Shown in pieces: positions 41,801-44,258 of a DNA stretch of 64,000 nucleotides. The translations under genes were made by a program, and so were the position numbers. How positions within the stretch are numbered: the first letter of the stretch is position 1; every line of letters starts with the position of its first letter. Under the pieces are notes generated by a model. That model searched no databases and was not told the origin of the DNA. It saw only the letters and a list, made by a program, of their open reading frames with translations. Source of the DNA: Vitrella brassicaformis CCMP3155 (taxonomy: Eukaryota; Protista; Chromerida); assembly GCA_001179505.1 (NCBI GenBank), contig CDMY01000353.1, positions 1 through 64,000 on the forward strand, given 5' to 3'.

Positions 41801-44258
41801 ATGGGCACTCGTGTGCCGTCGGGCAGCAGGACCTCGCTGCAGCGGTCGAGAATGGACTCGGGGGCACCTTTGACGTACCTGCACCAACGAGCGACGACAC
41901 CATACACACACGGGGAGGGGCGTGGGCTGGTGGGTGAGTGCATGATGTGTTTGTCGGTAGGTACAGCGTGTTGCGCGTGGGATGTCTCTTGGGGCTGCAG
42001 AGGACGCTCATCGACTTGCGGTCGCGGGAGAACTCCAGCAGCGCTCTCCTCTCGAACTGCGACTCCCAGTAGTCATTGAACACCGACACATCGTCACCTG
42101 TCCGAGCCTGACACACACAACGAACGCCAGACAGACATACCCCAAATGTCTGCAGCCACCCACACCCACACCCACATTCACATACCTTCTGCAGATGCCG
42201 CTGGTTCAGCCCCTCATCGTCACAGCCGATCTTCTCCACCAGCACACGCAATGCCGCCTCGGTGGGCTCGCCCTTGCGCACCACACGCTGCCCCTCCACA
42301 GCCAGGGTGGCCTCGTTGCAGAGGCTCGCCACCTCACAGAAGGCCTCCAGACACCGATCGTAGCCGTCAACAGGGGTCAGAGAGGGGCGTATGCGGCCGA
42401 TTGGCGTGTAGGTGGTGCCTTCGACAGAGAACTCACGCAGTGGGGGTGTGGGGGACTGGGTGTGTGGTGGCTGGCCGGGGAGGACGAATGAGGTGGCGGA
42501 CATTTCGTTGGTGGTGAGGGTGCCTGTCTTGTCTGAGCAGATGACGTTGGTGCAGCCGAGGGTCTCGACGCAGGGGAGCTTCCGGATGAGCGCCTTCCTC
42601 TCAGCCATGCGGCGGGTGCCTGTCTTGCAAACGCATTCATTGACACACGCATACACATACACACCACACACAGGGATTCTACGCATTGTCGTGTCGGAGG
42701 TGTCTTAGATACCGAGGGCAAGTGCCGTTGTGATGACGGCTGGCAGCCCTTCAGGGATGGCCGCAACGGCCAACGCCACAGCCACTTTGAAGTAATACAG
42801 CGCGCCCAGCCAGATAGACCCTGCACGCCACACACACACACACAGGCATACAGAGAGAGCGATGGACGAATCTGTGTGTGTGTGTGTGAGGCCACTGGTG
42901 CGTTCCGTCGGTCTGTGTGTACTGTCTGTGCGTACCGAATGCAGGGTCGCTGAAGTTCCGGATGTTGAGGGTCCACACGAGCAGGCAGATGCCCCCGATA
43001 ATCTTGGACAGCTGCCCACCGAACTCATCCAGCGTCTTCTGCAGCGGCGTGTCCTCCTCCTCCTGGCTGGCGGCGTCCACGGCCTGCTGTATCTTGCCGA
43101 TCTCGGTGTCCATGCCCGTCCCCACCACCACACCCACACCCGCCCCCTGGCTCACAGTCGTGGAGGCGAACACCATGGTGTTCTTGAGCTGCAGCTCCAC
43201 CTCACTCATAGAGGGGACAGTGTCTGCTGCGCCGTTGCCGCCGTCGCCGTAGACCATGTCGCGGTTGGCGCCTCCCGCCCCGCCCCACTGGGGCATCTTG
43301 AAGACGCTCTGAGACTCGCCCGTCAGCTGCGATTGCTCGGCTCTGAAAGACGTTGTCCCTCTCTCTCCCTCTCTCTGTGGCTGGGCAAAATGGGTTTACC
43401 TGAGTGTGGTGGTCCTCAGCTCTGTGATGCGAATGTCAGCAGGCACGACGTCGCCCGTCTGCATCTTGACGACATCGCCGGGCACCAGCTGGGCGGCCGG
43501 GAGGGTCGACCACCGCCCGTCGCGTAGGCACTCGGCGGTGTTGGGCTGCATCGCTCGCAAACCCTTCACACACACACACACACACACACACACACAAATA
43601 CACATGTACACACCGAGAGAGGGTGGAAGAGACCGCTCACCTGAACGGCCTGCAGTGCGCTCAGCTCCTGCACCACCCCGACAGTCGCATTGAGAATGAG
43701 TATAAGCAATATCACCAGAGGCTCCACCACATCGCTCACATCCACCGCCAGCTGAAACCCGCCACCGCTCAGCCACCTGCCGACCTCGCCAATCAGTCCC
43801 CCCGATCCCAGCCCCTCGCTACCCACAAGCACAGGCAGGAAGCTCACGAACGCCGCGGCCAGCAGGATCTTGACCAAAAGGTCGTCAAACTGCTGGGCAA
43901 TCAGCTTCCATAATGAGGGCGGGGGCCCCTCTGCCAGTCTGTTAGGGCCGAACTGCTCCAGCCTCCTTGTGGCCTCCTCTCCGCTCAGCCCGGCAGCGCG
44001 GTCTGTCCTCAGCAGACGGAAGACGTCTTCGACCTTCTGCGCGTGGGGGAATGGCAGCGAGAGGGGTAAAGTGATGGAAGCCGCTGTGCGCTCGAGCGTC
44101 GTTGTGGTGCCCCCGTGCATTCGGGTGGCCGGTGCGAATGCATGCTGCGTCTTGTGAGAGGAGCGTGACGATAGCAGTGCCGGGATGGAGAAGCCGCTTG
44201 CTGCGACGATGAGTCCCCAGGCTTGCACGAGCCGAAAAAGAGATGTCGGGATCTTCAT
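38855..44258 (-). CDS. SERCA: P-type IIA (SERCA-like) Ca2+-ATPase with N-terminal bipartite targeting leader
   Basis: [34 protein letters not shown] (DKTGTLT 42513-42533), [64 protein letters not shown]. Confidence 0.96.
39645..39944. other. Assembly gap (300 N) inside a SERCA intron
   Basis: N-run preceded by poly-G. The flanking exons join as VTLEQ|LREWSEC. Confidence 0.99.

Follow-up and report, generated by a model that had tools for sequence, protein, structure and literature searches.

Transport of Ca2+, Mn2+ and other metals in plant plastids is served by BICAT1/PAM71 and BICAT2/CMT1 (antiporters of the UPF0016 family), by the P1B pumps HMA1, PAA1/HMA6 and PAA2/HMA8 and, as a disputed case, by the P2B pump ACA1. 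For complex (four-membrane) plastids, by contrast, the route by which Ca2+ or Mn2+ reaches the stroma and the thylakoid lumen is, to our knowledge, essentially unknown. In Phaeodactylum, the Ca2+/H+ antiporter homologues of the GDT1 family (CCHA1, CMT1) are predicted to be mitochondrial, and the homologues of the PAA type are predicted to be non-plastid (PMC9546453). Here we examine a SERCA-type (P2A) ATPase gene of the chromerid alga Vitrella brassicaformis CCMP3155, which lies on the minus strand of positions 1 to 64,000 of contig CDMY01000353.1 (assembly GCA_001179505.1); this whole stretch of 64,000 nucleotides is referred to below as the window. As judged from its sequence, the gene encodes a SERCA-type (P2A) cation pump that is divergent and the second of its kind in this alga. 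Its predicted product begins with a leader that we read as a bipartite plastid-targeting presequence, and we regard plastid targeting as well supported, with a probability of about 0.65. Leader-tagged SERCA copies of this kind, which in alveolates share a Gln at the position of Glu908 of SERCA1a, point to an undescribed ATP-driven Ca2+ (or Mn2+) pump of complex plastids. In chromerids, as in dinoflagellates that live as symbionts of corals, a SERCA copy with a plastid leader would be a concrete candidate for a Ca2+/Mn2+ pump.

The window pump was compared with canonical SERCA and plant ECA pumps (TIGR01116; represented by rabbit SERCA1a, TgSERCA and the leaderless Vitrella protein CEM18264.1) and matched them in domain order, in the DKTGT and TGES motifs, in its ten predicted helices and at six of the seven residues of the Ca2+ site; its identity to alveolate SERCAs is 52 to 54%. 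It differs from the canonical pumps in (i) a leader of 67 amino acids (aa) in place of the cytosolic N-terminus; (ii) Gln908; (iii) an insertion of about 27 aa between transmembrane helices TM1 and TM2; and (iv) its long branch. The plant plastid transporters named above have the same proposed job, namely the movement of Ca2+/Mn2+ across the envelope or thylakoid membrane, but they are unrelated proteins of the UPF0016, P1B (with a CPx motif and a heavy-metal domain) or P2B families, whereas the window pump has PEGLP in TM4 and an N-terminus of the SERCA type.

Layout and composition of the leader

The open reading frame (ORF) at 44258-43566 on the minus strand opens with a signal-peptide-like segment, followed by Phe23 and by a stretch rich in Ser, Thr, His and Arg that includes HAFAP. 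The initial annotation had described this arrangement and had put the extra N-terminal residues at about 65; the minus-strand translation bears out the arrangement, and the residues ahead of the SERCA N-terminus number 67 when counted from the start of the Pfam Cation_ATPase_N match (aa 72) and from the alignment of SERCA1a residue 4 to aa 71. The signal-peptide-like segment (aa 1-22, 44193-44258) comprises an n-region with K2 and R9, an h-region from L10 to A20 with a best 10-aa Kyte-Doolittle mean of 2.14, and a c-region that reads A-S-G. Ala at -3 and Gly at -1 of the predicted cleavage site (G22|F23) fit the -3/-1 rule, with Phe23 (44190-44192) as the predicted +1 residue. Such a Phe after the cleavage site was found to be conserved in the plastid presequences of both chromerids (Füssy et al. 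2019; PMC6668581). The transit-peptide-like region that follows (aa 24-67, 44058-44189) carries HAFAP at aa 39-43 and RMHGG at aa 46-50, and the 45 residues beginning with Phe23 include 15 Ser/Thr, 4 Arg/Lys and only a single Asp/Glu. All 514 Met-started open stretches of the window were screened with a set of ad hoc signal-peptide criteria (a hydrophobic 10-mer of ≥1.9; small residues at -3/-1 and then Phe; and, in the next 40 aa, ≤2 acidic, ≥8 Ser/Thr and ≥2 basic residues), and two of them passed, the pump and the N-terminus of a Maf-like protein at 47700.

A cleaved signal peptide is incompatible with the cytosolic N-terminus of a SERCA in the endoplasmic reticulum (ER) membrane, and is consistent with translocation of the entire chain, as in other polytopic plastid proteins. 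After cleavage, the N-terminal segment of the A-domain would end up across the ER membrane from where it belongs, and a sensible role for the leader therefore requires onward transport of the complete protein. In the mechanism that we propose, the signal peptide (aa 1-22) would take the nascent chain into the ER and be cut off before Phe23, and the exposed Phe would act together with the transit-like region (basic, hydroxylated and reaching to about aa 50-67) to bring the entire protein with its 10 helices through the inner plastid membranes. Insertion would follow, either in the thylakoid or in the inner-envelope membrane, such that the ATP-binding domains lie in the stroma, and the pump would use ATP to export Ca2+ (possibly Mn2+) from the stroma to the thylakoid lumen or the intermembrane space. 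We infer all of these elements alike, i.e., cleavage, import, destination membrane, orientation, ion and the meaning of Gln908. A role of the pump in the supply of the Mn4CaO5 cluster or in plastid Ca signalling is speculation. If the mechanism holds, the pump would also bear on the import of very large polytopic proteins through the ER into plastids.

Coding status of the leader

A copy of the pump that is about 95% identical was identified on a metagenomic contig (L001, ENA ERZ893784). This copy retains the ATG, the reading frame and also the signal-like segment, the last with one change (A-to-T in L001/P0001), although the comparison of M1-R46 shows substitutions only and leaves the frame unchecked across these residues. 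Substitutions between the two sequences amount to 24.6% in the distal spacer and 12.3% in the 200 nt upstream of the ATG, in both cases with indels that are not multiples of three, and to 2.4% in the leader, where the two indels are both of 3 nt. The rest of exon 1 differs by 4.4% with no indels, and intron 1 by 15.6% with 8 gap columns (not multiples of three). The G+C content of third codon positions (GC3) is 0.65-0.75 in the leader vs 0.40 upstream. By these measures of divergence, 3-nt indels and GC3 relative to L001, the leader is evolving as coding sequence. A search of the metagenomes of the JGI found no further relatives of the pump.

The start codon has a purine (G) at -3. Since the frame opens at 44288, an in-frame stop lies just upstream of ATG 44258. 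The spacer upstream of the start (44259-44665, 407 bp) is shared with a divergent gene on the plus strand (ATG at about 44666) and holds four short out-of-frame upstream ORFs; a further upstream coding exon is unlikely because the divergent gene starts about 407 bp upstream. Within this spacer, which is otherwise 12-25% diverged, a block of about 78 nt at about 44300-44400 is 100% identical in the window and in L001, and is possibly a shared promoter or 5′ untranslated region (UTR) element.

Leader-bearing relatives and the Glu908 position

The initial annotation had called for a second, ER-type SERCA to be sought in the same genome, and a separate, leaderless canonical Vitrella SERCA was indeed found as CEM18264.1 (P0314) and as the MMETSP transcript P0198. 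The annotated CEM18264.1 is 145 aa longer at its N-terminus than the transcript-derived P0198, and its annotated start is probably over-extended. A full HMMER scan with exon 1 of the window pump returned many SERCA-type proteins with N-terminal extensions, including the Chromera velia protein Cvel_2924 (P0046), which has an N-terminal signal peptide and a basic region of about 70 aa. Cvel_2924 resembles the window pump in being of the SERCA type, in its leader, Gln908 and TM1-TM2 insertion, and in having Ser for Gly before F-N at the end of TM6, but the two proteins are only 46% identical and their leader sequences are not alignable. The public name of Cvel_2924 (UniProt A0A0G4F8M6), 'P-type sodium-transporting ATPase4', looks wrong because the protein scores far higher with the SERCA-type model (845 bits) than with the K/Na-efflux (IID) model (385 bits). 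Literature searches turned up no account of a P2A/SERCA pump targeted to plastids, nor any paper that mentions Cvel_2924.

Pumps of Symbiodiniaceae, including S. natans 'ECA4' (CAE7316951), Symbiodinium sp. CCMP2592 'SERCA' (CAE7700124) and a protein of Effrenium voratum, likewise begin with a signal peptide, after which come S-F-V-(H)-A-P (the motif FVAP or FVHAP) and a short transit-like region ahead of the pump; F-V-A-P after the signal peptide is a plastid motif of dinoflagellates. These leader-bearing SERCAs share Gln908 with the window pump and are about 54% identical to it, with a shorter leader (about 57 aa). The dinoflagellate leader-bearing ORFs are carried by contigs that are mRNA-like, since their length of about 3.4 kb matches an uninterrupted ORF of 1081 aa. 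A third set consists of ochrophyte-like metagenomic pumps, in which the signal peptide is followed by A-F-V-A-P, A-A-F(-S) or A-S-A-A-F. Among the apicomplexan matches no leader-bearing form was seen, in a search that was not exhaustive.

Two further patterns were observed in the ochrophyte-like leaders. R-G-G is shared 25-50 aa after the signal peptide (P0135, P0163/P0189, P0057, P0148, P0153, P0146, P0131, P0123, P0125 and P0154), and Y-N-A-S-x-V-D-A-G-S stands just ahead of the pump proper in many of these proteins. The counterpart of R-G-G in the window protein is R-M-H-G-G (aa 46-50, 44109-44123), and both may represent a processing site of the transit peptide.

The residue that aligns with Glu908 of SERCA1a, in TM8 and at Ca2+ site I, is encoded in the window gene by a CAG codon (Gln; 39361-39363, minus strand). 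When 154 full-length P2A pumps were aligned, Gln908 was present in eight, all of which were the window gene, Cvel_2924 or members of the Symbiodiniaceae leader-type cluster. Glu was present at this position in 141 leaderless pumps and likewise in the ochrophyte-like leader form. Glu908 is a ligand of site I, and a proton leaves from it via the C-terminal pathway (PMC8037123). In our proposal, Gln908 would mimic a permanently protonated Glu908 and may suit a pump that has the alkaline stroma as its cis side. The strict link between leader and Gln908 in alveolates would in effect be an experiment of nature on the site for proton countertransport in a very well-studied ion pump.

Phylogeny and number of origins

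A tree of 37 sequences was inferred by IQ-TREE with the LG+C20 posterior mean site frequency (PMSF) model. The window pump and Cvel_2924 were placed inside the group of apicomplexan and chromerid SERCAs (94/85), within alveolates, while the leader-type pumps of Symbiodiniaceae fell inside the SERCAs of core dinoflagellates (100/99) and the ochrophyte-like leader form constituted a separate long branch. Constraining all alveolate leader-types to one group cost 32 log-likelihood units and gave p-AU 0.009 in the approximately unbiased (AU) test, a value to be read in the knowledge that the constrained group was named after the tree had been seen. A single ancient clade of plastid SERCAs is rejected by this test. 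Since a clade shared with the chromerid forms is excluded in this way, the leader pumps of Symbiodiniaceae would derive from a separate duplication. The tree placement further implies that the shared Gln908 is either convergent or the product of gene conversion, and both alternatives couple the leader to an altered ion/proton site. A link to cyanobacterial PacL, which the initial annotation had raised for comparison, did not find support, as the pump nests among the eukaryotic SERCAs of alveolates in a tree built from rows other than PacL. An endosymbiont origin from a cyanobacterial or other bacterial P2A pump (PacL, LMCA1) was accordingly set aside on two grounds, the placement in a eukaryotic clade and the better match to SERCA1a than to LMCA1.

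A wider scenario can be offered only as a tentative one, which as a whole we consider somewhat doubtful. SERCA paralogues would have been recruited to complex plastids of the red type on two or more occasions, with one case in chromerids, another in Symbiodiniaceae and a probable third in ochrophytes, and the two alveolate cases would have converged on the change from Glu908 to Gln in the recruited copies. The result would be a pump for Ca2+ (or Mn2+), driven by ATP and located in the thylakoid or inner envelope, with a proton-exchange site that is re-tuned to the alkaline stroma. Under the same scenario, the plastid SERCA could do the job of the plant UPF0016 (PAM71/BICAT) antiporters, and it would appear to be absent from the non-photosynthetic apicomplexans sampled.

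Weighing of alternative explanations

Several points count against a plastid-targeted pump. The h-region of the leader is short and contains Gln and Gly, and the criteria of the leader screen were fixed after the candidate had been seen. Phe after the cleavage site is less conserved in the presequences of Vitrella than in those of Chromera (PMC6668581). L001 is only about 5% diverged, which limits the power of the conservation test, and the sisterhood of the window pump and Cvel_2924 in the best tree is weak (68/93.9) and joins two long branches. No annotated or transcript-derived protein of the pump gene was found by an exon-1 word search, the full HMMER scan, a profile of Cvel_2924 and the window exons or an exact look-up of the 230-aa ORF. 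In addition, a protein of ten TM helices and 1100 aa would have to travel through Sec61 and the import machinery and yet not become stuck in the ER membrane.

As an alternative, the hydrophobic segment might stay uncleaved as an extra helix or reverse signal anchor with a lumenal N-terminus; the pump would then remain in the ER or be moved by vesicles to the plastid's outermost membrane or to another endomembrane compartment, and its catalytic domains would be cytosolic. This arrangement, which we consider unlikely, would still work topologically if aa 1-9 were lumenal and the remainder cytosolic, and extra N-terminal helices are established for the P1B and P5 subfamilies of P-type ATPases. 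The positive charges K2 and R9 on the N-side nonetheless disfavor an N-lumenal orientation. Although the h-region is only moderately hydrophobic, its run of about 11-13 residues has the length of a signal peptide vs about 20 for a membrane span, and small residues occupy -3/-1 at its end (A-S-G|F). Diatom leaders of this kind are often classed as 'signal anchor' by HECTAR (e.g., J16222; PMC9546453 supplement). Further points against an anchor are the transit-peptide composition of the next 45 aa and the canonical FVAP/ASAF plastid motifs in the dinoflagellate and ochrophyte-like relatives.

A less probable explanation is that the leader is untranslated, the mRNA starting downstream of 44258 or initiation taking place at Met47, so that an ordinary ER pump with a short extension would be made and the upstream ORF would be 5′ UTR. 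The retention of the ATG, the open frame and the layout of signal peptide plus Phe in L001 argues otherwise, as do the changes at about the ATG, where divergence falls from 12.3% to 2.4% and GC3 climbs from 0.40 to 0.65. In its favor are the in-frame Met47, the upstream ATGs in the spacer and the stretch M1-R46 discussed above, where comparison with L001 yields substitutions only and no check of frame. The chance that such a leader would occur in an untranslated stretch is, however, low (2/514), leaders are found in the candidate sister pump of Chromera and, independently, in dinoflagellate pumps, and the genome already has a canonical leaderless SERCA. We consider it very improbable that the extension serves as a presequence for mitochondrial or dual targeting, or that it is a regulatory N-terminal domain, specific to the lineage, without a targeting role. 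Being basic and hydroxylated, with few acidic residues, the region after Phe23 would also fit a mitochondrial presequence, but the extreme N-terminus is hydrophobic rather than an amphipathic basic helix and the leaders of relatives have plastid-specific Phe motifs. Regulatory N-terminal domains are established in plant P2B pumps; no basic amphipathic segment resembling a calmodulin-binding site is evident in the leader of the window pump. A bipartite plastid-targeting presequence is the reading that we prefer.

Gene model and family assignment

The pump gene was modeled by local spliced alignment to the Toxoplasma SERCA (P0196) and to Chromera Cvel_2924 (P0046). The coding region (38858-44258, minus strand) is complete, with 20 exons that run from 44258 to 38858 and encode about 1171 aa, followed by a TGA stop at 38857-38855. 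All 19 introns have GT..AG ends; 18 of these are 54-115 nt in length, and one, of 389 nt, spans a scaffold gap of 300 N (39645-39944) that lies between the TM7 exon and the L7/8 exon and in which a few coding residues of the pump could be missing. These short introns carry many (GT)n/(CA)n runs (e.g., 43564-43640, 42098-42169 and 41412-41319), which translate as VCVCV or THTHT. Two in-exon inserts (43785-43721 and 43255-43200) that were spliced out by the Toxoplasma-guided model were retained as coding and are of uncertain status; the former was retained because it is conserved in L001 without indels.

Pfam analysis of the exon ORFs detected Cation_ATPase_N, E1-E2_ATPase, Cation_ATPase (N domain), Hydrolase (HAD), which fell under the Pfam cut-off, and Cation_ATPase_C, for which the match was short because the exons are small. 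The Cation_ATPase_N domain (PF00690, E-value 4e-21; aa 72-139, 43842-44045) marks the start of homology to all SERCAs, and exon 1 matched SERCA1a (E-value 4e-15) and Listeria LMCA1 (E-value 5e-6) in the PDB. The end of exon 1 (43641-43841) encodes TM1, the TM1-TM2 loop with its insertion of about 27 aa, and TM2; the insertion shows no indels in L001, and a shorter insertion occurs at the same place in Cvel_2924. The codons of the P-type phosphorylation motif (DKTGT) were seen in the frame translation at 42505-42545, the A-domain TGES is present, TM4 reads IPEGLP, and the Ca2+-site residues E309, N768, E771, N796, T799 and D800 are kept, with Gln in place of E908.

TIGR01116, the SERCA-type model (cut-off 703 bits), was compared with its PMR1, PMCA and Na/K sister models and was the best match for each of the four pump exons scanned, with whole-protein scores for the relatives of 845 bits (P0046), 1040 bits (P0273) and 812 bits (P0163). 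A Mn pump of the SPCA/PMR1 type (P2A-2) was rejected, as TIGR01522 scored far below TIGR01116 on the exons and the relatives and N768, E771 and T799 of site I are kept. A P1B metal pump like those of plant plastids (HMA1, PAA1 and PAA2) was likewise rejected, with TM4 reading IPEGLP instead of CPx and Pfam giving no HMA domain.

Neighboring genes of the window

A second gap of exactly 300 N occurs in the window at 61011-61310. The initial annotation had stated that the leaders of the LHC, GatC and Maf genes of the window share the layout of the pump leader, and a signal peptide followed by A-F was seen in all three. The Maf-like gene (47700, minus strand) has a signal peptide leading to A-H-A-F/L-L-R-S-S, the LHC gene (about 35064, minus strand) one leading to D-E-A-F/V-P-S, and the GatC-like gene (about 35186, plus strand) one leading to L-S-A-F/I-P-S-S-P-L. 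The start codons of the LHC and GatC-like genes are about 120 bp apart on opposite strands.

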